The position numbers were made by a program, and so were the translations under genes. DNA of 64,000 nucleotides from Saccostrea cucullata (lineage: Eukaryota): assembly GCF_032062105.1 (NCBI RefSeq), contig NW_026927173.1:124001-188000 (forward strand), read 5' to 3'. The stretch's first letter is position 1. The number at the start of each line of letters is the position of its first letter. This document shows positions 3,647-57,942 of the stretch, piece by piece. The notes under the pieces are model-generated. The model was not told where the DNA came from. It did not search any database and saw only the letters and a list, made by a program, of their open reading frames with translations.

Positions 3647-5589
3647 CTGCCATGTGTTCCAGCTTTTGTAATGGTCTTTCTTAAAAAGAACTTAGAGTTT
3701 ATGTTTTGATAATGTTAACCATGATGTCTTTAGAAATTAACACAGTTAAAAATGTTTTATGATCATACTGGAAACTAGCATTTATTGCCAGACTAGAAAT
3801 ATTCATGATTTTTGCATTCTTCTTTTATGCTATCATTTGTGTGTAACTCGATCTGCCTGCTTTATAAGTTGTATGCCAGCATGCTTAATTTGCATTACTG
3901 GAATAATGTGTGTGTACAAGTGTACTGCAAAACAGTTTATGATGATTTATAAGTAATTGATGGCTCTGTTGCTAGTTTATTATACATCTAATGAGATGCT
4001 GGTTTGTGACCAGTCTATACAGAGACATCTCTACTTCTGTGTATGTGAGATCCACACATAAAAAGGGTAATTTTGAACTTACAATCAAAACTTTTTATGT
4101 AGATGATACTTTTCTAGTTAAAGAGTCAGTGGCCAATTAAATCTATTGATATTTCTTAGAAATATGAACAATTATAAAGATCAGGGAACCTTCAATCTTA
4201 ATGTACTAACACAGAGATATAGCCAGTGGAAGAAATGTATTTTAGAATGATTTATTATGAAGTCAGTGCTATTGGTGTTTGATTTTAGAACAATATTTAA
4301 TATGTGCCATATATAATATCATGGAAAGGTCAAGGTCATAGACAGTGATCAGTTTAAGGCTGTGTGTACAATTTGAAGTTTTCCTTGACATTTCCTTTTC
4401 ATAAAGAGAAGATAATCTAGTTGACAAGGAAAGAGGATTTAAATAAATGTGTAGTGAAATATTGGAGAGAATGGAAGATTATTATTATGTGAATGTTCAG
4501 TACCAATGATATAAAAATCTAGTCAGTGGACTTTTTGCCAGCAGTATTTGTATGTTATAGCATTTTAAAAATGTTTGTTATAATTAAGACAAATAAAAGG
4601 TACAGATTTGATGTTTTTTGTGCATATTTCATATTTACACATATTTGCAGATCAATTGCAACTTCTCAGGCCTTTCTGACAAGTGGAAAAACAACCTCAA
4701 ATGTATTATGTAGATGCCATGACAACCCCCTTTTCACAAAATTTGAAATAAACGTGGGAGGACCTCTTATCTCTGGTGTATGGAGTTAAACTTTATTCAA
4801 AGTAAAGATATTTACCTAAAGTACACTTTAGAAGGGATTTGTTACTCTGTCTAACCTATATTTAATAAACAGGAAGATGTATAAATTTTTAACATCCGGT
4901 GATTGTTTTTTCTGACCTCTGACGGAAAGACCAGAGATGATGCCATTGATTTGCAGATATGGATATACAGCAGTTACAGATAGATAGTATTTGAGAGTTA
5001 TTTATCAGTAATATTGAATTTTTGCCATTGGATCCTACAAGTTCTCTATTAATATGTGCCATACAATTTGGCAAGGATTATATCTCTACTTTAAGGGTTA
5101 AGAAATGAACCTCAAGCACATTTAAATATGTTTCTTGAAGAGATTTCTGAAGGAGCTGAACTTGAAAATCCCATTTCATTGATTTTAACTTAAATATATT
5201 GGGATTTATCAGGATTTTAATTTGACATGTGGATAACCTGTGACATGACCTTTCAGAAAGACCAATCATTTTTTACAATCATGAATTTGACCTTGAAATA
5301 TTTTATTATGTTGAAAGTTGCAGTAAACAAGCAAATTCAAAGAAAGTTGGATAGGCAAAAATTTTTTATATATTCTTGAACAAATCTTTGAAATTATCAC
5401 CGAAGTTGATTTTTTTTTTTTTAAATCAGGTCAATCGTGAAAAGGTAATGATTAACACTCACAGGTAATGCACATGTCATATATGAAAGCCCTATCTCTT
5501 CTCAATATAATGTTTGTTTGAATGGCAACATAACGAAGATTAAAATTTTTTTGAATGCAAATTAAATATATTATTACCCAAAGTGGGGT

Positions 5590-7082: not shown

Positions 7083-10000
7083 TCAGATTTTAATGTTCTC
7101 CATGTCCTCTTGGAGTTGTCTTTCTCTCTCCTCCTTCATTGCTTTACCGTGTTTTTTCGTTATATTATAAGGCAGTAACTCTGGGTTTAAGATTTTAAAC
7201 GGAACGTCTGTCTTTTCTGCCTCCTCAGACTTGTTTAGCAGAGATCTGTAATAGTCCATGTCATATCCCCGGAACGGAAAGTTACCCTCCATGTACCCTG
7301 TCAAATATTCAACAATCAGATTTAATCATTCTTCCTTTGCTTCATCAGCCAGTGGATTTAGTATCCATGAAGTCAATCAAAATTCCTCTGAAGACATAAA
7401 TTATGTAAATGTACTTTGTGCATCCCCCCACTGTCCCAAAAATACAGCAAAAATTAGTATGGTAATCTCAATAAGCTAAAAATATTGCATTTCAAATTAA
7501 CTTGTAGCTTAATCAACATATGATAAGTGTGTGTTGAATACTGATTGTACATGTATTAGATAATGCTTACCACTCTCTATAGCCAGTTCTGTCTCCCTGA
7601 TGAGATTTCTCTGCTGTTTATAACAAACTCCTGTCTTCCTGTTGTCGGAGACCTTGATTGAGTTGGCATCTAGAAACTCCTTTAGCAGTCTAGGATGCTG
7701 AAAAAGGAGCAGAAATACACATATGAATTCGTACATTACTCATTTAACCAGTTATAATTTAAATGGTGCATTGTGCATCAAAGGTTTCAGAATAGTAATG
7801 GGCATAATGGCTCACCCTGTGGTCAACCACCAGATAAACATCTCGGCACACAGGACATGGGTTGTTTGTCAGGAACACACCTTTATGCTACACAAAGATA
7901 TAAAATATTTCTATATTCAATGTAAAGAAATACTCATGAAATAAATCTTAATTTCCTGATTTCATATCCATACCTTTCAGTTACAATCAGCCTATTATGA
8001 CCTTAGAGGTCACAGTATTACCATAAATTAAAGGGGAAATACTCTTACTTGTGTTTCAAATTTACTTCCACAAAAATCAACATGCTGATTCAAAAAGTGA
8101 TCAAGAAGTAAAATCTGAAGCTTGTTATAAATATATGTTGTTAATTAATCACAAAGAAGCCATTACTCAAAGAATTTTATTTTTGATGTATCCTTGTTCT
8201 CTTTTTTTTCCAGAAAGCTACAGTTCTGCAGTTTGTTTCTTGCATCTAAGCATAGCTTTGTCAGTCTGAATTTATTTCACAAGACTAGGTAACGGGTCAA
8301 TTTCACTGAACAAAATTTGTGTAGATTCTCCCTTACTTCCTAGATTGATTGGTAATGAACAAGACTAATTCCTTTACTTATCAAGATTTCAATAATACCT
8401 GACATACAACATAAGACATTGGTAATTGAAGCTAAATACCTCACAATGATTTGGAGATATTCAAATCATAATACACTGTATTAAGCCTTCAGTAAAAATT
8501 CTAACTTACAGTACAGGTGTACCGAGGCCGTGGCATTATGTTCCCTTTGTAGTTCCTTTTGTATCTCATCCATATTCTGTTTGACCCGTAAGCTTTCCTA
8601 AATGCTGAAGAAAGAAAAAGTTTAATTCTCATTTCTCAAAAATATCCTTTTCATTTCAATACCTCAATCATTTTCTTTCAAATGAACAAAACAGAAAATT
8701 AAAATACTATAGTTTCATATATTTTTCATCTGCACAAAAATACATAAAAATTTTTTTTTTTTTCCTCGAAGAAAATCATGCCTTAGACTTCATTGGTGAA
8801 AATTTTTTAAAGAGACATTACTCAAGTTCTACTAAAATTCATGTATTCTGAATAAAAATGCCTGTACAATAATGATATCATAAGGTGTAAAAGAATTTAC
8901 AGACCAGCACTGTCAAAGTACTTGATGCTTTGTTGGTAAGTAACATCAGGTTTCCGTTTCTTCTTGTAAGCAAACCCTCCGTAGACTCGGCCGAGTTCCT
9001 CCGAGTCTTCCTGGTCCTCCGAATCCTTCCACTTCAGTGACATTGATCTGGTACCAGACACGGCCAGCTAAACATACATATTTACATTTTAAAAATTCTT
9101 TGTCTGAACTAAGACTACAAATAGTGAAAATACGTGTACTTGATTTCTACATGAAGCTACTGGTTCATTGATAGGCATTGTTAAAAAAAATCAGAGAGAC
9201 AGAAGTTGGCAGAGCTTACACTGAATACTCAAGTCCAGCACAATCTCTTGAATTAGCTATATAGCTTAATTAAGGTATTCAAAAATAGTTAGATTAGATA
9301 AAGCTATTTTAAAGATGAAATAAAATTTCTTATATTATATTTTTTGTGTGATATGCTATCAAAATATATAATTCGTGATAGCATAGGCTAGTATCCTCGA
9401 GGAACCTATTTCGGTGGTATTAGCAAACTACGCGATAAAATAATCTTGACGGGAAAGATTAAAATAAAACAAATGTAACTAACTTTCGAAGGACTCTTTA
9501 TTTAATCAAATTATTTCCATATTAGCTAATAAAAAACTCTATAATTTGTTTTTCTTGCGATTTCTTTTTTCCTTGTTGTTTACGTAAGCAGAACTGTTGA
9601 GGTACCTAAATCGGTGGTATGGTACTTCTCAAAAGTTTTCACCCTAATAACACGAACCACGGGCATAAATTTATGAACAACGAATATTAAATCGTATACA
9701 TGAACAAAGGGATAAATTACAATTTTATAAAAGTTTTATTTATCATTGTGACAGGGACATAAATAAATTCATCACCACATCTTATAACTTTCGTTGTGCA
9801 GCAAAACTGCAAGTGGATCCAGTGGTTACAATTTTCAAAGTTACACTGAGCCCACTTCACAAAAACAACTTATTCATTTATTTTTTATTCATTTTTTGTA
9901 TTTATTTATTTTACCAACATGAAACTATATAAACTTTTAATAGCTTTCTTTTGATTTCTGAACTAATTTCTATGTATTTGTTTACTAACAATTTACCAAC

Positions 10001-10750
10001 AAGATTTATAAAAATAAACCCCTGGTATCAAAAACATATAACAGACACTAACTTTTGGACATCCTCTGTATTTCTATTTAATTATGCTAGCCACATGACA
10101 GTCACGTGACTTGAAAGCGCAGACGGTAAGCTGCGTCTACAGTATGTATTTCGATTAATTATTTCTTTTAAATCTATATTTAGAAGTCAATTACATTTAG
10201 ATATTTTTAGCATTAATAAAATATGGTATTTTTTGTTGATATGACAATATCGGCCATTTACTTACACTTTTCTCTGGCATTTCGGGTTTTTTTTTCACAG
10301 AGTCGTAAGCTTCCGTGTTTACAAACACTACGCAAAAATCAATGACGTCAGATCTCGCACGGTAAGAAAACGCGCGTGCCCAATGGGAAATACCACCGAT
10401 TTAGGAACCCCACCGTTTTAGGACCTTTGACGATATACAGAAAATATTAACTTCAAATCTGTGTCTATGTACCTTTAACTGTGAGGAATAATTGTAAGAT
10501 TTCTTTCCAGGATGATGGTAAAGCAATTGGCCTGAGTGGTAATTTAATGCATAAAAAAACATTATGACATGGCCATGGGTCAAGCCAAGAATGAACATTA
10601 AAGTGACAAATTTGTCCCTTTTTCGTTGTGTTTTTATCCTTCTCAATCTAAAAACGATTTCATATCTAATCTAAAAAAGAAAATATTAATTACCAGCTTG
10701 GTATCCAAAGAAACTAACTGCTGACATGCTTTCTGAAAAATCTTCAACAT
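7083..10750 (-). CDS. MRPS18B: Mitochondrial ribosomal protein S18B (mS40), ~242 aa; exons 10750-10694, 9067-8905, 8604-8510, 7887-7816, 7697-7571, 7297-7083
   Basis: In-phase GT-AG splicing gives MLKIFQKACQQLVSLDTKL-LAVSGTRSM..YFDSAAFRKAYGSNRIWMRYKRNYKGNIMPRPRYTCT-HKGVFLTNNPCPVCRD..HPRLLKEF..TGVCYKQQRNL, matching S18B motifs (YG..WxxYxRNxKG, NPCPxCRD, TGVCxKQ). The first exon is the least certain. Confidence 0.92.
9594..10415. mobile_element. Non-autonomous TIR DNA element in MRPS18B intron 1
   Basis: ctgttgaggtacctaaatcggtggtat (9594-9620) is the imperfect inverted complement of ataccaccgatttaggaaccccaccg (10390-10415). A third related motif lies at about 9399-9420. Confidence 0.55.
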
Positions 10751-11209
10751 GATTCTACTTTCACTTTGATCTGAATCCTCAGAACGTTTGGTTCAGTCTA
10801 TATCGGTAGAAGGGGGAGTCTTTATTGACACCTATTCTGTGCAAATAGATTCACCCCTAAATTAAAACAATCATTAACTTTGCAAAAATAAGGTTAAGAT
10901 TAATAACAATTTCTTTATAATATGAAAAGTTGATTCATGTATAGCATGCATAAATGGTTATTTTGTCCTCTTTTATTTCTGTATTAGATGCTTTTGTTTC
11001 TTGTAAATTTGACCCAAATTTCTGCATTGTCATACTGTGAGACGAATGGGATAAGTATTTTTCATAAAAAGGAATAAAATGAAATTGCTGATTTTTTTCC
11101 TTGAAATAGATTTATTTGAATTTCTATTTTACAATTTTACAAAAATGAAGTGATTTGAAAAGGAAGTATTCCAAAATGAAGAAAATGAATTTGACAACTC
11201 TTTTCCCAT

Positions 11210-11608
11210 ACTGTTCTCTTTCTTGAGCTCCACCGGTGACGTCACAAAATTGCCGACAGTGCTACCGCATTCGTTCACTGTAACGGCTAGGGATAGGTTG
11301 AAATGTACATGAGATTGGTTGTGTAAATTGCATCTAAATTTTTAATTCCTTTAAATTTATTAGTATTTTTTCTTAAATATTAATCAAAACTATCAACACT
11401 CTTCGCTACATTCTTCACATGTGACAACGACCGTTGGATTTAGCGTTTATAGAAGACTCCATATTGCTTGAAATACTGCTGTTTTGATCTATTTTTCTCA
11501 TGTATAAATTGTGGAACGTGATAATTCCACAATATTTCTTTGACCATAAGTAACCGTATAAAGGCTGAACATAAAGCCTAGACAGGACAAGGATTCACTA
11601 TTTCGATC
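11210..11608. promoter_or_regulatory. Putative bidirectional promoter and non-coding first exons of MRPS18B (-) and PPP1R10 (+)
   Basis: Locally CpG-enriched. CRE palindrome tgacgtca at 11237-11244, inverted CCAAT (attgg) near 11314, plus-strand donor cgatc|gtaagt at 11609, candidate minus-strand donor near 11209. It lies between the two divergent CDSs. Confidence 0.5.
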
Positions 11609-13096
11609 GTAAGTTGTTGGCTGGTTACCATATTGTTTATTTGTATAACACGTTTACCAATTTGATATTGTAATATATTATAAAAGTTAACTATAGATAA
11701 AATCTTATTAAAGAATCTTTCAAATTAGGCCTACATCAAGAATGAGAAAGAAAATGCAAACTCTGTCAGGTGATCGGTCCTCCTAGAGAAGACCGAATAA
11801 CTTATATTTTGTATGGCTTTGACATGTTATAATTGGGTGAAAAATGATATGAGTGTATATCAATGTATTTTTGTCTCTAAACTATTATAATTTCATAAAG
11901 ATTTTTATTGTTTTGTTTATATTTTACTGATAGACAATTTTTAAATGAATTAAATATGGCTGCCGATCTATATTCACGTCAGATTTCAACCACACCGAAA
12001 TGTAGGACAAGTCAACACATGGTTGCGATAACCTGTATAACCATGGAAACCGGGTTGATTGTCATACCCTTTGTCCTGGGGGGATATTGATTTTTTACTG
12101 AGCTTTGACACCCTTATGTGACGTCATATTATACGTCTGACCTTGGGCGGATCAAGGGCGTTGAAAATTACCTAAATAATAAATTTTGTTGTCTGTATCA
12201 AGATATTCAAAAGAGTGGAATAATGTTTGGTAAATAGGATTTGGTTTAAGAGATCATGAGTAATAACAACTAAATAAAATGGTAGGGATTCATACATTTG
12301 AATTTTCATGCAACAAAAAAATTTTATTACTAGCAGAAAAAAATGAAATGTATTTTCCTTTTTCTATAAATATATAATCTTTTCTGCAGAGGATAATTTA
12401 CTGTGACAGTATTCTAAATTAATAGATCATGTTTTATATATGCATAATTAAAAATAAATATATTATTTCAAAATCCATAATTAATTATTAAAATTAAATT
12501 AATAAAGCACTTGTTGAAAAACAGATTTACTAATTGGCATTGTAATCTGACTTTTTAAACTTTTAAAATTTCCTCTAAATTTCAATATATAGTATCAAAA
12601 AGCCTGTTTTGTCTAATGTGCATCATAAAATTTATTTTGTGAATATTACCAAAGAAAAGGCCAATTTAGCAGGACAACTGTATCAGCTTTTGTCTTGATA
12701 TATTAAGTTTACGGTACAAGAAATTTTAAATTTTATCTTTTCATTTTTTCGATTGTAAAATCTTGAAAATTATTCCTTACAGCTTTGACAGTACTGTTGC
12801 AATAATATGAAATGCTTTCACTGGGTATCTTTAAAATATTTATTTCCTTGTCAACTGTTTTTGTAACAAAACTATCATTGTGTTATTTTTGAAATGGAGA
12901 GATTTCAGGAGGAAGAATTTTTATATAAAAGAAAAAAGTAGTTGAAAAGGGGTCTATTAATACCACAATACCTAATACCACAAGTAGTTGAAGTTACAGG
13001 AAAGCATTATGATAATAAAAGGATTAAAAGCATCTTATCGATAAGTTGACTTTGTAAAACGAAAAAAGTTTGCTACTAAAATTCTGATATATATCT

Positions 13097-13326
13097 GAAA
13101 TAGCAGCAGTTCTTTTCTCACCAAATGAATATTTTTTCATGCATACATTTCATCAGAATTATAGTTTGTACACTTTGGAAAAAATAACTTTCTGTACGGA
13201 AAAGAGGAAAATCTCTGAATTTTCCCAACTACAATTCTGATAAAATGAATAGTCAATACATATGAACGTAACAGCATATGCATGAAGAAAATATTCATTT
13301 GGTGAGAAAAGAACAGCTGCTATTTC
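13097..13326. repeat. ~230-bp foldback (nested inverted repeat) element, MITE-like
   Basis: 13097-13145 and 13277-13326 are near-perfect inverted copies (~50 bp). An inner pair atcagaattatagtt / aactacaattctgat is also inverted. Confidence 0.8.
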
Positions 13327-14347
13327 AATACAGGGTAGGGCAAGGAGAAATTTTATTTGAAATAAAAAAAAATCAATAGATTTAAATATATCGGAAATTT
13401 GATATAGAATCTCATTTTGAATTGCAGTAGACAATGTTTAGATGTTAAAGAAAGAATAGATTGTTTTCCTATGACATATTTTGCCCCGGAGTTATTCCCC
13501 TTGGCTGCCATCTTGTAGGGCAAGGAAGTGAATTTTCCTCTTTGAACAACCAATTTTAAACATGCATGGCAGAAATATTTGGTGAAAAATATTTACAATC
13601 TTGAAATTATGAATTAAAAGATGATTTTACAAATGTATATTCATTAAAAAAAAAAAAAAAAAAACAGGGTTATCTTTACCTCAGTAATCAGTATAACAAA
13701 CTGAACTTGGTTGAATAATGACAGATTCTGGGAATACTGACCTACAATATGGCAATCATGGGGAAATAACTCTTGCTTAAATCACCTCAATGAAAAACCA
13801 TTCACATTTTGTATAACAATTCTTGTCTGTCTATTTAAGGTGCCTAAGAGTTGAAATAGCAGGGGACATAAAAAGGGTACAAGGGGGTATGGGGTTCCTC
13901 TCTTAACAAAAAAAAAAAGCCTTGGGGGAAATTACCAGTATAACCGGAGGATTATGTCAATATGGGCAGGGAAATTCCCCAGCCACTGGGTCTTGCAGAC
14001 AACCCTGCTACTGTTTCATTAACACTCTTACAAAATTAGATTCAGTCATTAGATTGATTAGTTTATTGTTGAGAGAAGCCCTGGTTTTAACCATTTTTGA
14101 CACTTAAATGTTCTCTCTTTAAGAAGTCATTTCAATGACACAAAGATTAACTCAATCAGCAAAACATTACAACGGTCAAGTTTTGAACTTGATTTTGCAG
14201 TTTTAACTTAAAAGTCTTATTTTTTTCTCTTTTCAGATTGCTGCAGTCTGCTGCGTGGAACAATGGTCGATTAAAGTCAAGAAAGCATTCAATTTCCCTT
14301 GCTCTCTGATAATAATAATCGTCCCAGATGAAAAATATTAAAATAAA

Positions 14348-17300
14348 ATGGTAATTTTCTATCATAAAGCAGAACAACGAAAATAAAAAAAAAGTTGCTG
14401 AAAATGTGTGTCAAAACCAGTGTGTTTGTGGACAGAGTGAAAGTGGGATATAAGACCTTGAAAACAGCATTCTCTTTATTGAAGGCATAAAATTTATTTT
14501 GAAAATTTTGTTAAAAATGCATATTATTAGAGTTATATTATAGAAATGGTCTTTTTCTGAGGGAAATTCTAATAAATCGGAGGTATGTATCCTGGACAAA
14601 TAGGTCTTGAAATCTAACGTATGGAGAAGTCATCAACTTTGGGATGGAAGTGCAACAATTCCTGGCCCTGTTTGAGACATAAAAAATAAGGTCAAGGAAT
14701 TAATTGATACATAAAAGCAAGGTTCACCAAGGGCCCTATTTGGCCTTAAAAAATTTTTTTATTCAATTTTAGCTGACATTTTAAAAATCAATTTCACTCT
14801 GACATGACGACTAGATAAAAAACGTTTTTCTTACTATGTACAGTGAAACTAGCTTAGTCCAGATGTTGTGCAATATGAAATCTTGTCTAATACAGTAGAA
14901 ACTCAAAATTCAGTTGTTTAAGATACTGTATGACATGGAATGGTTGCTTAATCTGGTCAATTTCTTTGGAACCAGGTCAAAAATTCCAAGTAAATATTGA
15001 TTGAATAGGTGGGGGATATTTCAAATATTTTCTTGGCTAAGTTCCTGCAGAATATCTATTTGTTGAGCATACTCATAGGCACATATTTTTTTTTGTAGCA
15101 TTGAAACCCACTTCATATCTACAAAACAGTTTCTTCTTTTTGTGGCTTTTGAAAAGTATTTTTTTTTTATAAGATGAGTTGAAAGGAGAAAGTTTTCTTT
15201 ATATTAGTTTTGGAGAATGGAGATAGGACTTAGAGAATCCATAAACTGGACCATTTTATACATAATGTGAACTTAGCTCCTATATCTCTTAGTACAATAT
15301 ATTGGCAAAGCATACAGTCCCATGGCATAGTAAAGGTAAAAATGAAATTATGTACAAAATGCAGGAAAATGAAAACAATCTGGACATTGATTAATTGATA
15401 AAACCGATGAATACAAAAAGAGGACGGACTTCAATGATTTTGATAAGCTTCATTGATTATGCTGTCCTGCTGATCATACAGGTATAGAGGCTTTAAGATT
15501 GAAATGGCACATGACAATCTTCTTGCCTTGCTTTTGTCATCAAATATGTATAAGCCTTTTCTTCCATAAAGACTGGAATCTTCTCTAAAATCCAACTTGA
15601 AGCAAAGTGCAAAATCTGTTGGTTGTGAGAGACATAGTTTTCTCATATGAAATGCATAACACACCATTATATATTTATAACAAAGAATTCTGATTTAATG
15701 GGTTGAATTCAGATCATAGAATTTTTCAATTTTCATATAATAACTATAGGTAAGGGGAGAATGAACAAAAAAAGTGATGCATCTAGTCTTGAGATTATAA
15801 AACATAAGGTGCTTTTAATTTTCCGAATTGAAATAAAATGAAAAGATTGGGTTCACATTTGGTCAAGGGTTTAATAGAAGTCATGGAGCATGTAGATAAT
15901 TTGTAAATTCGACTCCATTATTGTGAATGTTTCTTGGCCTTCAACTGTTTTTTAATGCCCATTGTGATAAAAAATAAAAAATTACAAGAGGAAATATAGA
16001 AATAAAATTTCAAGTTGTTTAAAATGTGGCTGTATGACAAAATCATTATCAGTCGACAAAAAATGCATTCAACGGAAAACACAAGGAGTACTTCCTGATT
16101 CACAATTATTCTCGTGAGCATGTTGTTTTGAGGGATTTTCTCAGGATACATGCATTAACAGTATTGATTTTATATTTAGATTAATATCAAAATAAAGAAA
16201 GCACACTATGGGCATGATAAATTCAAGGAATCATTGAACTTTTTCAAAAGAAATTGTTAGGGGGGGGGGGGGGTACCATTTAGGAATAAGAGGTAGCCAC
16301 TTCTGGAAAGACATTTCTGAGTATTGGTGCTTGGGTGCAGTATAGTCAAGTATCTTTTTTAAGGCAGTAAAACAGAATAAAACTAGTTATCCAACTCAAC
16401 AACATTAAGATCTGAAAGATTTTGCATTGCATCTTCATCCGGTAGAAGGATCCTGTCCCAGTTTTGAATAGGGAATAAGTTTATCCTACTTAACATTAAA
16501 ATAAAAAAAAAAAAAACAAACTTTAGTATTTTCTGATTTTGCCTTTGTTTTAACAATTTGAAATTCTGGATCAAAAGGGTACATAGACCTAAAAGGACCA
16601 ATTAAGCCCTTAATATGGATTGGATTGGGGGGGGGGGTTAATGATACCTGTTAGATGAAAGAAATTGAGCCAAAATTGATGTTTAAAGACTTCATTCTTT
16701 GGTGTAAAAAGATTTGCACAGACGAGATAAATTTGAATGCTGTTTTCAAGGTTTATGAGAGAAAGGTTTGAAAATAACAACATACTGCAGTACATGAATA
16801 CATATAAGGCCAAGAGCAAATGTTTTATTTCTTTATGAAATTGAAGGTTTGACTCTACATAAGGCCAAAATATATACACAGACACAGATAAAAATAATAT
16901 ATATTTATATATAATTATAGCCTTATTGTAATGTAATATATGGTACTTTGATACTTTGTCTGAAGAGCTTCTAGTGCACATCTCCAAGAATTCTATAGAA
17001 TTATACTAAATCTTCAATGTATACCCTGAATGGAAATATTTTTGGCTTCGTTAAATTTGATTGAGAAGAACATGAACCCTCTTCAATGATTATTATAAAA
17101 ACAATTCTAGAAACAAACACATTGGCATTCATTTCTGAAATTCAAGAGGGACTACCATTACCCAGTTCATATATCTGATTTTATAAGGAGCTTTGCTTTG
17201 ATGAACTATACATCTTCCAAGTATTTGAAGTTAATGATGACAAACTTTTTACAGGCCCCAATAGATCCCCATCAGTTGTTGAAGGGACTAGCTCCCTTGT

Positions 17301-20300
17301 TAACACCAAATGGTGCCATCAAAAGTCCAACTGAAACCTCCAGAATAGTTAGCTTGATGAAAGAAGCAAACAAGCTTGTAAGCAGATGTGTTTACATCAA
17401 CATCCTTAGAGCTACAGAGTCTGAGAAAACTCTGGAAAAGTAAGAAAACGTTCATACACTATCAGAATACTTCAAGCTATATAAATCTCATTAAACTGAA
17501 GCAAGATGAATATTCTGTTAAAGCACATGCACAAAATATTAGTTCAACAAAAATAACACTGGAAAACATCCTGGTCGCCTATACATGTTGATTTCTTGAC
17601 ATTTCTTTTCATTGATACCTGTAGGTTTATTGAGGTGGGAGGTTGGGATGTCCTCAATAGTTGGCTACAAGACTGTAAAGAATCGGAGAATTATCCAGTT
17701 CTGGTAGAGATGCTTAAAGTATTCCAACAACTTCCTGTCACAGTGGAACTACTCAAGCAAAACAACTCCGCCAAGACCATCAAGGCTTTTTCTAAATGTG
17801 ACAATGAAAGTGAGTGTCTATATACAGTATTGATTAGCTGCTCTCATGTTTTATTATGTTGTACATGTACTAAAAGGGCCTGCTACATTGTACTAACCTG
17901 AAGCTGGACAACTTCAGGGAGTGATATTGTAAATACGACAACTTAATAAAGCAAGAATACAAAGGCTAGAACACAATAGGGGGTTATGGGGGGATGAGCT
18001 GTATGCAGGATTATTTTCGCCCCATGTTATTTTCGTTCTTTTACACTTGATAACAAATTTGCCCCATTTTAAATTAGCCCAATCACAGTTCTGTTTAAGA
18101 AATTTATACTGTTTTCTTTGAGTTCCACCCATTTGAAATTCCCCCATTTGTGACTTGATTGAAAAGGGCAAAAGTAAAACAGGGGCCAATATTTCCCTGT
18201 ATACAATATATACTAATCCTGGCTAGGGACATGTACTTCATTCCACTGTGTTTCATGCCTGTGTACGCTTGCTTACTCTTGTTACTGCCCTTTTGTTTCT
18301 ACCTCCTTGCCTTTCGGGGAAGTGAGTGAGTTCCTTTTAGTTCAGTTGTTTGAGCCATAATTTGCCTCGGTATTGGCCAGCGACTATTCAACAATATTGC
18401 ACGTATTTCTAGGCATTCATAACCACCATCATCTGTAGAGTAAAACACCCCTCAGACAAAGTACCAGAATGAGCAATTCTGATTTGATATAAGCATCATT
18501 TGTTAGATTTGTTAGAATTACAGTATTTTTTAAAAACCATGGGGAATGAAAATCATTTTGTTGTAAGCGTGAATTCATTTCAAGCATGTTCGCAAGTTTT
18601 ACTGTGGACAGTGAGGTTGATGTATCACTGTATTAGTGTATGTTTTGCATCTGTAATATAGTTACAATACACATTTGATAGACTGTTTCTTTATTTCTTT
18701 TATAGCTGTCAAAACAATGTCCTCTGATATTGTGGACAAGTGGATGGAGAAGGTCAGAGGAAAGAATAATGAAGTTTCAAGTATGTAAATATATATATAT
18801 TTGCTCTGCAAAAAGTTTATTACTTGTCATGTTTAATTACTTACTCAATGCATAGTGTATTTTTATGGAGAAATATACATGTTAGATGACTTGATTTTGA
18901 AAGCATTGAAATTTCAAGTTTTTAATCTGATGATGTAATTGCTAGTAATTTGTGTTTGCAGATGACTCTAAAAAGAAGAAGTCAGACAAAGAAAAAAGTA
19001 AAAAGAGTGACAGAGACAAGGAATCTGATGAAAACAGGAAGAACAGTGATAAATCTAGAGATGAGAAATACTCAAAACATAGGACTAAAGAGGAAAAACT
19101 CAGTGAGGATGTGAGCATTAAGGACTCGTTAGGTGTTGTGACAAAAACTAACGGACTGAAGCTTCATATCAAGATAGAAAGACCCCCAGTGTCAGACAGT
19201 GATAAATCAAAATCAGAGTCCAAACCAGACAAAAAACGAGCTTCCACGGTCAAAAGACCAAACACAAAGTTCAGGTCTACAGGTGCGATTTTATTTTTGT
19301 ATTTTAGATAATAATTGATCAGTTTCTTGAAGATTTTTGATCGTTTTCAAACTCTATGAATGCCAAATTTTACAGGTTTGGAGGAGGATATTGTTACCAA
19401 ACAATCAAAGAAACTGTCAAATGATCCAAACAAGTCGCAACAGAAGAGGCAAGGGTAAGGAGGACATAAATAAACGTATTACAATTGCATTTCAAAGCAA
19501 TTACAATTTACATACACTAAGATGATAATTGCTGAATGACATTTCTAATTTATTTATTTTATGAAAGTTCGGAATTGAAACCAAAGGAGGAGCAGCCACC
19601 TGGAAAGCGGTCTCGTTTGGAGGGTGGGTCTACAGAGGATGCCACATCAGAGCAACCACCTGCTCAGTCCCCCACCACAGCTTCTCCTGCAGATGTGCAC
19701 AAGCAAATCAAAATAACACCGCCTAAACCCAAAAGTGAGTTGTCAAGTTTACACATTGTAAGGAAAGAAGTACATGTATCTGTCCGAAAGCTCATATCCA
19801 AATTTCAATGTTTTTATCTGACTCATCGTGCTGTCGTCTGATTTCTCTGTAAGAGAAATGGTAATGTTTAATGTGTAAATTCATATTAAAAATTCATGTT
19901 TTCTTTTAGCTGTGATACATGAGAGTACAAATTTCATTGACTCTCTCCTTCCTGACCGTCCAACTGGAGTGATACGTAGGAAGAAGAAGACGGGTGCCAC
20001 GGTGGCGATAACCTCTGTACCTGGTGCCTCGCGTGGTCCAACCACTCCCATTACTGCCAAACCCCCAACGCCTACATCTCCCCATACCCCCATCTCCCCT
20101 ACCACTGCCATCAAAAACTCACTTCCGGTTGTTCCATCTGTAAGTCCTCAAATAGATTCACTTTTGTTATATCAGAGGTTTTTTTTTGTTGGTCATATCA
20201 CTCAAACACTTGAGATTTGTAAAAGTTTTAATTTAATGGAGAGTGGTTTGTATACTGTATAAAATGACATTTTTAAAAATAAATATACATCTGTAATTAA

Positions 20301-22956
20301 CCTCTAACCTGTCTGTGATGAAGAAAGCTGGGACTGATGATAAAATATTTATGATTTTGATAGTTTTACAAAGACACATTGGAAACACCAACTGAAGAAA
20401 AAAGGAGTCCAAGCCCTCCCACATTGGACAAGAGGAGCCCCTCCCCCACAGAAAAAGAGGACAAAGATACTGCCCCACCCACTCTAGAGGAGAATAAAAC
20501 TTCAGAAGATGTGGAAATGACGGATGCTTTAAAAGAGGGTAAAAACTTTGATCGCTAAAAGACTATTTTATTTTGTAAAAAGTTAATATTTCTTCGGAAT
20601 TTTTAATTTTGTTTGAAGTTATTGAAACATTGTAATTTAAAATGAGAGAAAAAATGATGAGTGAACAATATTTTGTTTTCAAAAACTTTTTCTGACCATG
20701 CAAACTGAAAATAAGGTAACAACTTAATATTGTACCTATATATTGTGTCTTGAAATACTTGATACAGGCTCTGAAGCCAGCAGAGAAGCAATGGACACAG
20801 ATGAGAAGTCCGGGGAGTCTAAGGGTCTACTGACAACAGGTGCTACAGGCAAAAAGAAGAAAAACAAGAAAGTATCCTGGGCCGAAGACTCCAGTTTACG
20901 ATTATTTCACTACTTTGAACTGGACGAGACAGAGAGAGGTACAGACAAACTTATGTTTCTATTTTTCTAGGTGCAGTTGAAACATTTTTACAAACAATAA
21001 AGAAAAGGGGGGCATTATTAATATTTAATTTCCTTACATTTATAGAAAATGTGAATAGGCCAAAAGACTTTAACCAGTTGAAGAAACAAGAAGCACATTT
21101 GGATAGGAAGGTAGGCATGTCTTGGTTTTATAAATATGTTTGTAAATTGTAAAGGTTCATGTACATGTAGGTAAATCCTGGTTTTAAAATAGAAATTTTA
21201 CGAGCAGAGTTTTTATTGTATTTATAATACACATAAAATTTATTTACAGGTGATGGAATCTGCAAGAAGACAGACCAAAGACAACATGGTTGAGGCCATA
21301 CCTGTAAGTATAGACCAAGAATTGTTTTATTACTAGGGATATTCATTGTTCAAGTTCTCTGTGTTTATTCAGTATTGCTGATTTATAAGGGGAGTAACTG
21401 TGATTTGAGTGTTGGATTATCTTTAAAGTGTAAATAAATAATGAACAAGTTAATTGATAACTGTAAAACATTGTAAACTGTTGTAGAAATAAAACCGAAG
21501 GGAGGTTACCTGCAAATGCGTTGTAAACAATTAGGCACCACTTTGTGTAAGGAAGAAGGTGTGAACATTAACATGATTTTTTAAGTTCAATTTAAATATA
21601 CAATGAATGTTTAATTTTATACGAGAAATAAAATCAGAAATGGTTCACAGTGTTTTTGTTTAAAAAATAATCTGTTCCGTAATTGTTATGTAACTCTTTT
21701 GCGTTTGATGTCCAAGTGATAAGTTGCCACAAAGCTATCCTTGTAAAGGGGATAAACTTGATCAAGCCATCCTATAAAGGGAGATTTATATGAAAATTTA
21801 GTGGCACTTTTTAAAAATCTAGATTTCATAGAATTATGATACGGTAAAGATGAAACTTTGGGGAAACAACGAGGTAGTGTAGATTCAAATTTGTTAAAGC
21901 ATTTGCATTAATTGGCATGTAATCAAATGCATCCAAAGTTTTACATAGAAATATACAGGAAAATTCTTTAAAAATCTTCTTCTCAAGAATGACAAAGCCA
22001 TAATTCATCATATTTTTATGGGAGCATGCTCAGGTAGTGTAGATTCAAGTTTGTTCAAATCATGACCCCCGGGGGTAGGGCAGGAAATGGCCGAAGTTTT
22101 AATGAAATATATAGGAAAATTAAAAACCTTCATCAATATATATGGAAGCATGCTCAGGTAGTGTAGATTCAAGTTTGTTCAAATCAAGCCCAGGGGTAGG
22201 TACATCAAAGTGTTTGAAATATATAGGAAAATTCTGTATAAAAATCTTTTTCCACAGAATGACAAAGCCATAATTCATCATTTATTTGGAAGCATGTTAG
22301 GAAACCCTAATTACTGTTTGTACAAATGCAATGAACATTTTACGTTTTAAAACCGACCAAAGTTTTAATAGCAATATATAAAAATTCTTTAAAAATCTTC
22401 TCAAGAATGACAAAGCCATAATTCATCATATTTATATGGAAGCATGCTCAGGTAGTGTAGGTTCAAGTTTGTTTAAATCATGACCCCTGGGGGGTAGGGC
22501 GGGGCCAAAATGGCCGACCAAAGTTTTACATAGAAATATATAGGAAAATTCTTTAAACATCTTCTGTGTTCAAGAATGACAAAGCCATAATTCATCATAT
22601 TTATATGGAAGCATGTTAGGTAGTGTAGATTCAAGTTTGTTCAAATCATGAAGTGGAGGAGGCCTCCATGGCCGATAAAGTTTTACATAGAAATATATAG
22701 GAAAATTCTTTAAATCTTCTTCTCAAGAATGACAAAGCCATAATTCATCATATATATATGGAAGCATGCTCAGGTAGTGTAGATTCAGTTTGTTCAAATC
22801 ATGACCCCTGTAGGGTAAAGCAAAATGGCCAGGCAAAGTTTTTAAAGATATATAAAGGAAAATTCTTTAAAAATCATTTTCTACAAAGTAGCAAATCCAT
22901 GATTTATTTAAACTTTACAATAAAAAGCCATTTTCTACTTTTTCCTACCCTTAGTG

Positions 22957-22992
<36 letters not shown>

Positions 22993-24745
22993 TATATCTA
23001 GTATAGATTGGACGTTTTTAAATACACAAATGAGTATTCAAATTAAATCTTCTGTTCCATTGTAGGCTTCCTGACACACCAAGTGAACCTGACCTAGAAA
23101 CAGTAGAACCTGCAGATCCGAAGTTTATTCCCCTCGAAGATGTGAGTTACAGTACCTTTAAGCATTGCATCATTGTTAAATACAATGTGAACATAGTGAT
23201 CTTACTCAGAATGTAGACAAATTTTGGTGTAGGCTGAGCTTATTTGTGATTTACTTTTTGACCTTTCAGGAAAACTCCACAGGAGAGGATGTTTTCAGTC
23301 ATGTTAACCCTACTGCACACGAGGCTACTGCTGCTAATACTCCTCCTGACCCCAGTTCTATTTTTGGTCAGCTTAATATACCTCCAGACATTGCAGGTGT
23401 ACTGCAAACATTCCAGCAGGGAGGGGGGCTTCCTCCAAACCTAGACCCCGCCAGTGCTCAGAATATCCTGGCATCAATGATGGTAAGAACATACTGTAAA
23501 TGTATTACTTTTAGCAATGTATTCTATTTAGCAATTTTGGCAGAAAGTAGAATGTGCTTAATCAAGTACATGTACACCACTAAATGTTTTGTTTATTATA
23601 CTTTTACATCTCCCGCTTTCAGATTGCACTTAATCAAATCTACATAAAGTTAAACTTTTTGAAACATTAATTTGTGCTAAATATCATACACACATATATT
23701 TACAGTATCCTGATTATTACACCATCTCAAAAGATTTTTGTTTTCACATGTATATTGGTACTTATCTTCATTCAATGAAATGTACTTTTACTTTCTGAAC
23801 TTCCAGGGAACAGTTGGAGATCCAAATAAAACAGGAGATGCCTTTGACAAACTGAAACAAATTCTAGAACCATTCCAATCCATGCAGAATACTGGAGGTA
23901 ATGTTCTTGTTATCTTAAAATTTAGACTATTGAAGAAAAGTAATTTGTGAGAATAACTCTTAAAAAATGCACTTATATTCTTAATGTGTTTTTTGTACCT
24001 TTTAGTTATGGGACCTATGCACCCGCCTGGTCCAGGCATGAGAATGCCTCCCCCAGGGCAGGGGATGATGGGGCCACCTCCAGGTGGAATCTTAGGAGCT
24101 GCTCCTCCAGGGTTTAACCCCATGATGGGACCAGGTGGACCCCAGAGATTCCCAGGTATGACATTGTATATTTATTTTAAAAATGAAAAAGACTTTTGTT
24201 GTGTAAAATGTCGTACAACTTTTTGTTCATTTATCAAGGTTGACCTTTTGATTTCATTGTAGGTGGCCCTGGGAATGATGAGTGGGGAGAAAACATGATA
24301 GGAGGACCACCAATGAGGGGTAGAGGTCGGGCGGGTATACCAATGAGAGGTGGGGGACCACGTGGCCCTCCTCCAGGAATACCTGGGGGCCCTCCAATGG
24401 GTCCCCCAATGAGAGGAGGAAGAGGGGGCAGAGTTAGACAAGGTAAATATTATTCTGTTGGTTTGCTCATACGTGTGATTAATAATTGGGAAACAAAGAG
24501 AAAAAATGTAAATAGTGTAGGAACAATATCAATCTAAAATATTTTAACAATCCCATTCTTCTGTTTTTCATAAGATTCATAATTTGTGGTATTCTCAAGT
24601 TATTACAAGAATTTCTCAAACAAGTGACCTTTTTGTTTCAGTGAATGGAGACCGAGCGGTGTGTCGTCATTTTGCTGCGGGTGGTTGTCGGAGAGGAAAC
24701 ACTTGTTCATTCCTACACCCGGGTGTTAACGGACCACCAGTATAG
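14348..24745 (+). CDS. PPP1R10: PP1 regulatory subunit 10 (PNUTS), about 18 coding exons: ATG 14348-14350, 17255-17439, 17625-17809, 18706-18780, 18962-19282, ~19376-19454, ~19568-19734, ~19910-20139, ~20363-20538, ~20769-20938, ~21046-21110, 21250-(damaged), 23066-23141, ~23270-23482, ~23808-23897, ~24006-24154, ~24263-24442, ~24641-24745
   Basis: The N-terminus [61 protein letters not shown] matches the PNUTS TFIIS-N domain. PP1-binding motif [13 protein letters not shown] at about 20853-20890, P/G/M-rich and RGG region, and C-terminal C3H1 finger [27 protein letters not shown] are present. Confidence 0.95.
18000..18206. mobile_element. MITE in a PPP1R10 intron
   Basis: Imperfect terminal inverted repeats: tgtatgcaggattattttcgcccc and ggggccaatatttccctgtataca. 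Confidence 0.6.
21780..22991 (+). mobile_element. HINE-type element with a degenerate ~166-bp satellite array in a PPP1R10 intron
   Basis: Repeated tcaggtagtgtagattcaagtttgttcaaatcatgacccc and aaaatcttcttctcaagaatgacaaagcc units; terminus ctcaggtgagcgatgtggcccatgggcctcttgtt. Confidence 0.8.
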
Positions 24746-30909: not shown

Positions 30910-31122
30910 GATTGGCTAGCACTGATGCATCATCTTTTGATTATGATGTCACAATGGATATACCGGTATATATACTGGTGACGTCATAATGATTGTGACG
31001 TAACCATGACTGGAACAACATTTGTGAAAAGTGAAAAGGCTCTCTTTATGTAACATACTAGTAAATGATATGAACTACAGTATAAATATAAGTAAATCAT
31101 GGCTAAATCAGTAAATAATTAA

Positions 31123-32175
31123 TCAGTAATTACTGGGTAAACATTTAAACAAATTAACAATATCAGAACGGAATTTCATGTCAAAATAACCATAAATAAT
31201 CGGGTTAACCACGTGATTGATGACGTAAAATCTCTGCAAGGTGAAAAAGATGATCGTCTCTGCGTTAGAAATATTGTACCACATTTCTGGCGAAAGTTTG
31301 CTTATGATCAGAAAAATGCATGTTGGTGTGTAGGAAATCAGATAAAACACAATAATGGTGAAAAACATCACATTAAAATTAATTTTGCTTTCTTTGTGAA
31401 TCTTCGGTTTCGACGAAATTTCTTTGGTGCTGCACTGGCTTGGTTTATTATCTGAGATTGAATCGAACTGCGTTGATGTGATTTCCATACTTTTTCTACG
31501 TCGAGCCGCTCGTAGTTTGTTGTGACGATAGATGACGACTCCGATGGGAATGTAGAGGAAACCCACGGTAAGGATGTTTACCACCATCAGAAGAAAGATG
31601 ATGTAGTAGTAAATTGCTTCATACGTAGGATAGTTCCCTGCTCCCGTGAAACAAGTTAATCCAGTAACGTTATGTCCATTAAAGATTCCCTCCACTTCTT
31701 TGTTTCCAGAAAACAACAAAACTGGACACGAGTACAAGATAGAGAAAACTACAATACATGCCAAACAAAGCTTTCTCTTGTTCTCGTCCATTTGTTTCCC
31801 CAGAGGCTTGCAGATCTTCAAATACCTCTGGACAGCTATTCCGATAAGTAGCAGAGCCGACAGTCCCGAGGTAGCTGTCATGGTGTACAACAAACCTTTG
31901 CAAAGTCCGGACGACGGAAAGTCTACAAAGTAGATGGATTCGAGAACGTAAAACACCGAGGCGACAGTACTTGCGATTAGATCGAACACTGCCAAGATGG
32001 GTATGAAGTAGCGATCATCGCGGTTCCCTTTCATTCGAAAAGCGTACACAAGTAGCACCAGTATGTTCCCCACCAGACCAATAAAGCAGACGACACCTTG
32101 AAATACAATGGTGGGCAGAAGTTTCTCCGCATAGTCCTGGTTCCATTGCAGAGTGAGATTGTGTACTTTATCCAT
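31123..32175 (-). CDS. Intronless rhodopsin-family (class A) GPCR, ~350 aa, peptide-receptor-like orphan
   Basis: Seven hydrophobic segments with GN (TM1), LAVFD (TM2), Cys at the top of TM3, QRY in place of DRY, SYTP (TM6) and NPIIY (TM7). The ATG at 32175 sits in a ccaccATGg context, with a splice acceptor about 30 nt upstream. Confidence 0.92.
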   Translation of the reverse strand: MDKVHNLTLQWNQDYAEKLLPTIVFQGVVCFIGLVGNILVLLVYAFRMKGNRDDRYFIPILAVFDLIASTVASVFYVLESIYFVDFPSSGLCKGLLYTMTATSGLSALLLIGIAVQRYLKICKPLGKQMDENKRKLCLACIVVFSILYSCPVLLFSGNKEVEGIFNGHNVTGLTCFTGAGNYPTYEAIYYYIIFLLMVVNILTVGFLYIPIGVVIYRHNKLRAARRRKSMEITSTQFDSISDNKPSQCSTKEISSKPKIHKESKINFNVMFFTIIVFYLISYTPTCIFLIISKLSPEMWYNISNAETIIFFTLQRFYVINHVVNPIIYGYFDMKFRSDIVNLFKCLPSNY

Positions 32176-34455
32176 GGTGGTCACATACCCCCTTTCCCCG
32201 TAATCTGAAGTAAAAACTGTGTTAGACTAAATTTCCAAAAATAAATTGACAAGGACCAAAAATCTTAGGTTTTGTTGATATTTCCATGTATTTTTCACAA
32301 TTCTATAACATTTCTAGCGCCTCCATCAGCGTTTTAAAATCACAGCTGTTTCTAGCACAAACTACATGAAGAAGATGGTTATCCTCTATAGTGACAATTT
32401 GTTTTTCATTTAATAGTTTCAATTCAAGTATTATGTATTGACCACGGGGCGTTAAGCTTGAAAGATTTTACTGTTTGAATGGTATGCCAGTAGGTAGCCA
32501 AGATTAGGGGGTATTAAAAGCATTTAACGACAGGCAGTAGAAACCTTATACATTCAAAGCTAACATCGCCTCCCACTTGCAGATTTAACGAAAATTCTAT
32601 TTCTGTGGTTTTGTAGACTACATGTTTAGATAAATACTTTATAAAAGAGTAACAGGTTGTGATCGTGGGAATAAGCCTATATAATATTGGTCCTCTATTT
32701 AAAGAATTAACTAAATGTACCACTTGAAACTAAATGATGCATGAAAAATATGTACACGTTATAATACTGGTAAACTGACCTGCGTTAAGTGTATCCTGAG
32801 ATATAACATATGCATCATCTTTGATACATCTATATTAATTTTATTACTAGTATTATGACAAGTCTAAATGATTTTAGTAATAGGACGCATTATTTAAGTC
32901 ACGATTATACGACTTTCCGGTTATGTAGCTGAAGGACATGAACCTGTTTCATGACGGTTCATCGGGTAGAAAAGAAGCAAAAAAAAAGTAGCAGCATGCA
33001 ATAAAATTCAATGAAAGACTTGAAATATATAAGGGCTCTTCTTCATATTTGACACACCTGTACATATAGACAGTATAACGATCTACCTGGTTTCAAAAAA
33101 GGTCTTGTTCTGTGGTTTTATGGGAACCCTGTAATAATGTCAACAACCTCGGTGACAATTTACATTTTATGCCTTTAAAATTTAAACTGTTAAAGACTAA
33201 GTTAGAACGCATTAGGTGCTTTAATACACTGAGACAGAATACTAGAGACATATACCAATTACATGGTATTTTCATACATATGTATTTGGGAAAATAGGTA
33301 ACTGCGACCGTTTGAAATGAAGTGATGGTAATATTAGGGCAAGGCCTAAAAGCTTTCTATAAACATTACACACTATACGCTCAGGCAGTATGTTTTCTCT
33401 ATGGTAAGGTGGTAATGTAGTTTTGGTCTGCCTGTTTGTCTGTTAATCTGTTTGTATGCAAGAACTTTAACCTTGCTTAGTATTTGAATGGTTGCTTCCA
33501 GGGCTTTTATATGTTACCTTTTTATTCCTAGTGACAAGACCTATCTTTGTCATTTATCTTTCTTTTCCAGAAAAAGCTAACTCGGCCATGTATAAAACAA
33601 TGTAGCCAGAAAGTTAAGTCAACAATGTAAGCAGTGTCCAGTTCTCAATATGTCTCCTTCCTATACTTTATGTAATGTTTTCAATTAATGCATTCTCTCA
33701 ATGCCTTCTGAGAACTACATTTATTAACAAATATGGACCCCCCATTTTCTAGAATTCCTGTATTAAGATTGAATGATCAGAGAATGTGCACAATGCTATA
33801 GAGATGATTCAAAATCTGATGCTTGTAAGTACAAGTTTTTTTCCATTTTGGACATTTGCTAGCACATTTCAGGTAACCTTTTATCTTTGTAGCAATGAGA
33901 ATATTTCATCTGATATTTTTTTTTATTATTCAATTCATTAGTTATAGACACATCTCAGCAATAACATACACATATCACAGATTTTTTATTATAAAGTACA
34001 AACTTCTTCAAAGTGTCAATATTTTCATATCATTGTGAATGTCTTTAAACGCTGTGAAAAAAAGTTAACAAAATATTTTTGCATCTACATTCAATATAGC
34101 CTTTGAACAAATTTTCTAGCTGACATAAAAATATTCTTTTATGACAACATATACATTAAAGAAATTATATGAAGTGAAACAAGTTTTGGTAATATGTAGG
34201 CACCAAATCATATCACAAAAATAAAGATTTTTAAATGACCAGCAGTGTTTATAAACAAAACCAGCAGTTTCAATGTGTTCCAAAATATCTCAAAACTTTG
34301 GCAGTATACTAAATTCTTTACAGCAGTATTAGAACATTAAGACATTGATAAAAAAAGAAATATCAAAATCCTTCTCATCAATAATACGTAGTATTTAAAA
34401 TAAATGCCATTAAGTACAAAAATAAATACATTGTATCTGCTACAGAACAGTATAG

Positions 34456-57636: not shown

Positions 57637-57942
57637 CGTTTTGTTTGATTAATTATATATTGTTTAACGTCCCTCTCGAGATTTTTTCACTTATATGGAG
57701 ACGCCAACACTTGTCGGTGGAGAGCTACAAATTTTGTCCCATGCTCGGCACTCAGGGCCATTGCGCAGTGAGGGATCTTTTTCGTGCCAGCACCTACTGT
57801 GACACGGGACTTTGGATTATACTGGTCATCCGAAGGACTGGTCTCCACGTCCCACAGTGGGATTCGAACCTGCGACGTAATGATCAACTCCTTACTTCCC
57901 GCCTCTAGAGAAAATGCTCTAACCACTGCGCCATTCGGGCGA
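57637..57942 (-). mobile_element. tRNA-derived SINE
   Basis: Minus strand has A box TGGCGCAGTGG and B box GGTTCGAATCC, a central cccgtgtcacagtaggtgctggcacg..gatccctcactg region, and a tail gggacgttaaacaatatataattaatcaaacaaaac. Confidence 0.85.

Follow-up and report, generated by a model that had tools for sequence, protein, structure and literature searches.

The head-to-head MRPS18B-PPP1R10 gene pair of the oyster Saccostrea cucullata and its probable descent from the bilaterian ancestor

PPP1R10, also called PNUTS, is a protein phosphatase 1 (PP1)-targeting subunit acting on RNA polymerase II, and MRPS18B is the mitoribosomal protein mS40. In human, the genes coding for these two proteins are adjacent at 6p21.33, in the class I part of the MHC (major histocompatibility complex), where they diverge from a short region that is described as a bidirectional promoter and that contains a full cAMP response element (CRE) (PMC2774331). 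In the duck, the block common with human has the order ATAT1-MRPS18B-PPP1R10-ABCF1 within the vertebrate MHC 'D-P' block (DDR1 ... ATAT1-MRPS18B-PPP1R10-ABCF1 ... PPP1R11), as given in PMC10845735, and both genes are found on zebrafish chromosome 19 according to PMC1309616. Here we describe the orthologous pair in the oyster Saccostrea cucullata, in a stretch of 64,000 nucleotides (the window) that belongs to contig C9310 of a 1.17-Gb assembly. An earlier note on this DNA had proposed that MRPS18B and PPP1R10 are head-to-head in the oyster as in human, and its account of the human arrangement agrees with the published description.

Neighbouring genes that stay together over long evolutionary times have been described repeatedly. 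Among gene neighbours that metazoans have conserved, 5'-5' orientation and short spacers are over-represented (Irimia et al. 2012, PMC3514665), and ancient microsyntenic pairs listed there, such as HSPE1-HSPD1, are likewise unrelated housekeeping genes in 5'-5' orientation, with a spacer below 1 kb, in distant phyla. Conserved 5'-5' housekeeping pairs are already a described class, and no concept is changed by the present locus. Both genes are presumably already annotated in S. cucullata. A full-text literature search found no paper stating that the pair is conserved outside vertebrates; the main texts of PMC3514665, PMC12672016 and PMC2871058 contain 0 mentions of the two genes, and their supplementary tables may list the pair.

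The window is animal DNA, AT-rich, with a G+C content of 33% and a CpG observed/expected ratio of 0.47. On its plus strand, PPP1R10 extends from about 11250 to 24745. The 61-residue translation of 17255-17437 retrieved, from a library of 1.84 billion proteins, a protein of 847 residues (P0001), labelled in one source as the oyster protein 'serine/threonine-protein phosphatase 1 regulatory subunit 10-like', whose residues 2-62 are 100% identical to this exon. Aligned by tblastn, P0001 follows the plus-strand exons of the window in 13 segments that are 94-100% identical, seven of them at 100%. The landmarks of PNUTS are all encoded. The N-terminal TFIIS-like helical domain (P0001 residues 2-146) matches the PDB entries 7lqt, 6vti and 6zv2 (PNUTS 1-148) with an E value of ~1e-36, as well as Pfam PF08711 (E 3.9e-9), and is specified by window exons: exon 3 (17255-17439; tblastn identity of 100%, splice sites, PDB match) carries its first part and exon 4 (17625-17811; Pfam, splice sites, tblastn of P0001) the helical bundle. 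The other coding exons, delimited with P0001 by tblastn, lie at 18708-24745. They include an exon at about 20752-20937 that matches the PP1-binding stretch, i.e. the RVxF-type motif and the residues following it (P0001 498-541 against 4moy_B, the PNUTS peptide bound to PP1, E 9.3e-9). The last exon (24641-24745), with the stop codon, encodes the C-terminal CCCH zinc finger, recognized by Pfam zf-CCCH and zf-CCCH_4 in the exon and in P0001. By these similarities the plus-strand gene is identified as the oyster orthologue of PPP1R10/PNUTS.

The 5' end of PPP1R10 was delineated by RNA mapping over 8850-14849, with raw reads of three oligo-dT runs and the contigs of one further run. Exon 1, untranslated, occupies 11250-11608 as judged from the RNA depth in bins 11250-11649; its start is approximate, with reads present by 11315. 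A joint with GT..AG ends links 11608 to 14237 in all four runs, and exon 2 (14237-14350) consists of 5' untranslated region (5'UTR) except for its final three bases, 14348-14350, which are the ATG start codon. Reads stopping at 14351 carry on with the beginning of exon 3 (17255), again in four runs out of four, and P0001 begins with a methionine followed directly by the exon-3 peptide, in agreement with an ATG at the end of exon 2. The unusual start codon that the earlier note had placed at 14348 is thereby borne out. Upstream ATGs are also present in the 5'UTR: exon 1 has four and exon 2 another two, of which the one at 14328 is out of frame with the main ATG and opens a frame overlapping it. 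These six ATGs suggest a possible translational control through upstream reading frames.

On the minus strand, MRPS18B (mS40) is made of six exons and runs from its ATG (10750-10748) to its stop codon (7083-7085). Its exon borders were obtained by enumerating GT/AG pairs and retaining those that keep the frame; the exons were searched individually and the length of 242 codons is the sum of the exon lengths. Exon 5 (7571-7697) bears the S18 domain, recognized by Pfam Ribosomal_S18 with an E value of 3.4e-5 (24.3 bits for a cut-off of 21). The top PDB matches of three consecutive exons are mitochondrial S18b/mS40 chains, collinear at residues 60-94 (exon 3, 8510-8604, E 9e-5), 99-118 (exon 4, 7816-7887, whose seven best matches are S18b chains with weak E values of 0.046-0.18) and 117-161 (exon 5, for which an S18b chain is the sole match, with a weak E of 0.83). 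The further matches of two of these three exons are all to unrelated proteins, with E values of 0.66 or worse, and no S18a or S18c chain appears among the PDB matches of the three. Besides the S18 domain, the stretches of the S18b-type N-terminal extension are present, YG..W..Y[KR]RN.KG in exon 3 and CPxC in exon 4; the exon 3 acceptor at 8604 was preferred because it retains a conserved aromatic residue. Exon 6 (7083-7297), an open frame with the stop codon whose acceptor at 7297 gives the best frame-keeping pairing, ends in a C-terminal stretch similar to that of the ant-like copy described below. Elsewhere in the same genome, an S18a-like gene was found with identical scores on two contigs, which may represent a single locus in two copies; an S18c-like gene also lies on another contig than the window's. 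Because of the matches to S18b chains and the presence of S18a-like and S18c-like genes elsewhere in the genome, the minus-strand gene is assigned to MRPS18B, and not to MRPS18A or MRPS18C. The divergence of MRPS18B (minus strand, ATG at 10750) and PPP1R10 (plus strand, ATG at 14348) announced by the earlier note thus agrees with the Pfam, PDB and P0001 identities and with RNA joints in all four runs.

The 5' part of MRPS18B comprises exon 2 (8905-9067, donor at 8905 or 8911), an open frame right after an acceptor AG that is covered by few RNA reads, and exon 1, whose coding part of 19 codons (10694-10750) ends in a GTAATT donor and whose 5'UTR reaches at most to about 10849. An in-frame stop codon is located 42 bases upstream of the ATG and the phase of exon 1 agrees with that of exon 2. 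At this N-terminus, where a mitochondrial targeting presequence would lie, the 19 encoded residues are basic, the first acidic one not appearing before position 16. The three raw-read runs reach mean RNA depths of 0.14, 1.22 and 0.23 over the bin 10650-10849, with similar values on exon 2. Intron 1 contains repeats. A young dispersed repeat of ~1.05 kb (9390-10435) is nested in an older one (9341-9380 and 10439-10478); the genome contains 34 matches to it, of which 13 are nearly full-length and 89-100% identical. Copies are 97-99.6% identical over 1026-1046 bp. RNA joints from 9380 to 10439 and loose ends that disagree with one another occur at its flanks, the older flanking repeat being transcribed, and the reads at 10434-10478 and 9341-9380 are also repeat-derived. 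As an alternative first exon of MRPS18B, a short exon with an ATG and a GTAAGT donor was considered at about 10280-10266, beside the CpG/CRE/CCAAT block at 10.1-10.4 kb. It was rejected because this block is within the 1.05-kb repeat, with copies 97-99.6% identical elsewhere, and because the RNA in 10250-10649 comes entirely from a repeat piece of ~45 bp with disagreeing loose ends.

The RNA depth falls to zero across 10850-11249 in all runs. PPP1R10 reads start within 11250-11315 and MRPS18B-side reads reach only the bin ending at 10849, which places the two transcript starts about 0.4-0.56 kb apart and the true spacer at ~10.8-11.25 kb. Orientation is divergent and the start sites are less than 1 kb apart, with a very low depth on the MRPS18B side. 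Starts kilobases apart, which the earlier note had held to speak against its proposal, are not what the RNA indicates, the few reads on the MRPS18B side being the less secure part of this estimate. The candidate shared promoter region (10751-11249) is AT-rich, with only 3 CpG in 10751-11233, and the segment 10751-11608 is single-copy, occurring once in the assembly. As the earlier note had stated, no gene separates the pair: no open reading frame (ORF) of at least 100 residues occurs in 10751-17254, the longest having 91, no Rfam family reaches its gathering score in the whole window, and no tRNA lies between the genes. For the spacer and the introns, the idea of a small RNA gene was discarded, with 0 Rfam matches and the sole tRNA of the window at 57849-57940, a tRNA-Leu(GAG) call on the minus strand.

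The earlier note had further described a CpG-enriched segment with CRE and CCAAT motifs at 11.2-11.6 kb. Its CpG content is modestly raised (10 per 300 bp, where the window averages 3.9 and has its 95th percentile at 11) and it includes a CRE at 11237; as to its position, it is mostly exon 1 of the PPP1R10 5'UTR and not spacer. This full palindromic CRE (TGACGTCA, 11237-11244) belongs to a single-copy stretch, shortly upstream of the point where the PPP1R10 reads begin, and is surrounded by 6 CpG in 11234-11284. Five full CREs were counted in the 64-kb window for 0.32 expected, and none of 100 shuffles reached five. A second one in single-copy DNA, found by motif scan and genome match count, is in PPP1R10 intron 1 (12119-12126); the CRE at 10343 is inside the 1.05-kb repeat; the remaining two are at 30979-30986 and 59625-59632. 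The top CpG peak of the neighbourhood (17 CpG in 10101-10400, observed/expected 1.75) also falls inside that repeat, and the block at 10.1-10.4 kb is a recent insertion in MRPS18B intron 1 and not a promoter. The repeat bears, in addition to its full CRE and local CpG peak, a CCAAT box and a palindromic E-box-like site, and a mobile element with such promoter-like motifs could seed regulatory sites. PPP1R10 intron 1 holds another repeat, at 13455-13810, resembling a miniature inverted-repeat transposable element (MITE). Its inverted ends measure ~68 bases; a first look gave 1190 candidates in the genome, with copies sharing 80-85% identity. The reads at 13450-13850 are attributed to this MITE-like repeat, transcribed somewhere in the genome.

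The pair was then sought in other animals. Metagenome contigs scanned with an alignment of 32 PNUTS relatives yielded 30 PNUTS-like loci, most of them short or resembling intron-less transcripts; six of them (L028-L033) that match residues 63-138 only were left out of the PNUTS count. Five loci were usable, with a match beginning at residue 61 or before and an upstream flank of at least 3.3 kb. MRPS18B was searched in the metagenome loci with three motif patterns and by tblastn with the oyster exons, the latter of which may overlook very divergent copies. In one locus, L024, MRPS18B-like exons (tblastn E 6e-9 and 5e-7, plus two motif patterns) are located upstream of PNUTS on the opposite strand, i.e. 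head-to-head, and this locus was the only one among the 30 found by each of the searches. No Pfam-recognizable ORF lies between its MRPS18B-like and PNUTS exons. The next gene on this contig, PYROXD1, is 88-90% identical to PYROXD1 of myrmicine ants, from which the contig appears to be ant-like and hence ecdysozoan. Comparison of the contigs further shows that the L024 PNUTS exon starts exactly at codon 2, matching the oyster. An intron directly after the PNUTS start codon is thus seen in the oyster (14348-14350 / 17255) and in L024 (9995); the copepod-like locus L018 is without it.

The upstream neighbour of PNUTS differs in other loci. At L018, where PNUTS is intron-less, the divergent upstream neighbour is RFC4, with copepods as nearest named relatives (65-67% identity); the upstream neighbour is a ZIP transporter at L025 and an acyltransferase at L026. 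The fifth locus, L015, is uninformative, having only 3.3 kb of flank. Since MRPS18B is absent beside PNUTS in L018, L025 and L026, the pairing is dispensable in some animals. The L025 neighbour (4175-5465) is a divergent ZIP zinc transporter gene (Pfam E 9.5e-28), and the vertebrate ZIP gene SLC39A7 lies in the MHC region according to a gene list in PMC10845735. The ZIP gene beside the L025 PNUTS could be a coincidence or a trace of a wider old linkage.

The same head-to-head pair is found in the oyster (a lophotrochozoan), in an ant-like contig (an ecdysozoan) and in vertebrates, and by rough estimate chance adjacency in three lineages is negligible. From both points, an inheritance of the MRPS18B-PPP1R10 arrangement from the last common ancestor of bilaterians is well supported. 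The persistence since the protostome-deuterostome split that the earlier note had suggested is upheld by oyster, ant-like contig and human, and the two genes are side by side in the duck; among the five usable metagenome loci, the ant-like contig has the adjacency and three others, with another upstream gene, do not.

What has kept the pair together is a separate matter. The oyster pair shares with the human promoter the same orthologues, the divergent orientation, the short region and a full CRE. It differs in that the oyster CRE adjoins the PPP1R10 start, ~0.4-0.5 kb away from MRPS18B, and in that the oyster spacer is AT-rich and not a CpG island. We regard as the likeliest account, with moderate confidence, that the orthologous pair, with starts ~0.4-0.56 kb apart, is ancestral and has been kept through closely set promoters. 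The two core promoters would sit so near each other that a break between them would in most cases harm one gene, and upstream elements, the CRE at 11237 for example, would probably be common to both. The pair would then be a housekeeping bidirectional-promoter pair, like many described conserved 5'-5' neighbours. A shared bidirectional promoter holding the two genes together is compatible with these observations and is a plausible candidate cause; both the shortness of the spacer and the human case speak for a promoter that is shared or interleaved, in keeping with the over-representation of short-spaced 5'-5' pairs among conserved neighbours (PMC3514665).

Several observations weigh against this account. 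In L024, ~6.5 kb separate the nearest recognizable coding exons of the pair and no full CRE is present between the two genes. Among the usable loci the pair is kept in one of five and a different upstream gene is found in three. On the oyster side, no CpG island spans both starts, and the AT-rich spacer without such an island means that the two core promoters may be independent. The RNA libraries are oligo-dT and apparently unstranded; no joint between exons 1 and 2 of MRPS18B was frequent enough to be listed, and the RNA over the mapped interval showed no pile-up at a start site, which leaves exon 1 and the start site of MRPS18B weakly supported, by very few reads.

It is possible, and clearly less likely than retention through closely set promoters, that the ancestral pair was kept passively, no break having yet occurred in the short spacer of oysters, ants and vertebrates, in which case there would be neither shared regulation nor selection. 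A short spacer is a small target for breaks. Passive retention is compatible with the AT-rich spacer, with the clustering of CpG and CRE on the PPP1R10 side only and with the losses that other arthropod-like contigs show, the pair being split in three of the five PNUTS-like contigs whose flank was usable. Nor does the oyster show the wider vertebrate block, its ATAT1 domain being on another contig. On the other hand, survival of the pair in three bilaterian branches amid dispersal of the block is what selection on 5'-5' pairs predicts (PMC3514665), and the human region is a working bidirectional promoter (PMC2774331).

An origin of the adjacency independently in oyster, ant and vertebrates, by chance or convergence, is very improbable: nothing direct speaks for it except that some chance neighbour pairs are expected genome-wide and that this pair was chosen post hoc, and the same two genes in the same divergent orientation in three lineages speak against it, a given pair being adjacent and divergent by chance in a few cases in 100,000 per lineage (a rough estimate for ~20,000-25,000 genes). 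Least probable of all is an assembly artefact at the gene junction, since, although no RNA read spans the RNA-free interval 10850-11249, the only run of N in the window (62072-62219) is not near the junction, 10751-11608 is present once in the assembly and the same arrangement is found on an independent contig of another animal.

A stronger version of the retention through closely set promoters would make the regulatory logic itself ancestral, with a bidirectional promoter that contains a CRE and has been under CREB and its coactivators since the bilaterian ancestor, and with direction-specific switching of the human type in molluscs. We consider this improbable.

The surroundings of the oyster pair have little in common with the vertebrate MHC. 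With the 'D-P' block, as outlined in PMC10845735, only the MRPS18B-PPP1R10 adjacency is shared. The flanking framework gene ATAT1 is not on the contig of the pair, an ATAT1 domain (PF05301) being located on contig C11888, and a wider MHC-type block in the oyster was rejected on this ground, no search having been aimed at ABCF1. Downstream of PPP1R10, in contrast with the vertebrate block, the window has no long ORFs resembling ABC transporters and instead contains an intron-less ORF of 353 residues on the minus strand (31123-32184) resembling seven-helix receptors (G-protein-coupled receptor-like), and three consecutive retroelement-like ORFs on the plus strand (41369-43151).

Overall, the oyster locus provides an RNA-supported invertebrate counterpart of the experimentally studied human bidirectional promoter, in which the pair stayed together while the surrounding MHC framework dispersed. 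It lends itself to asking why short head-to-head spacers persist, whether through shared elements, here the CRE, or merely as small break targets. Should the doubtful ancestral regulatory logic prove true, the supply of mitoribosomes through MRPS18B and the PNUTS-PP1 brake on RNA polymerase II would have been coupled ever since the ancestor of bilaterians.

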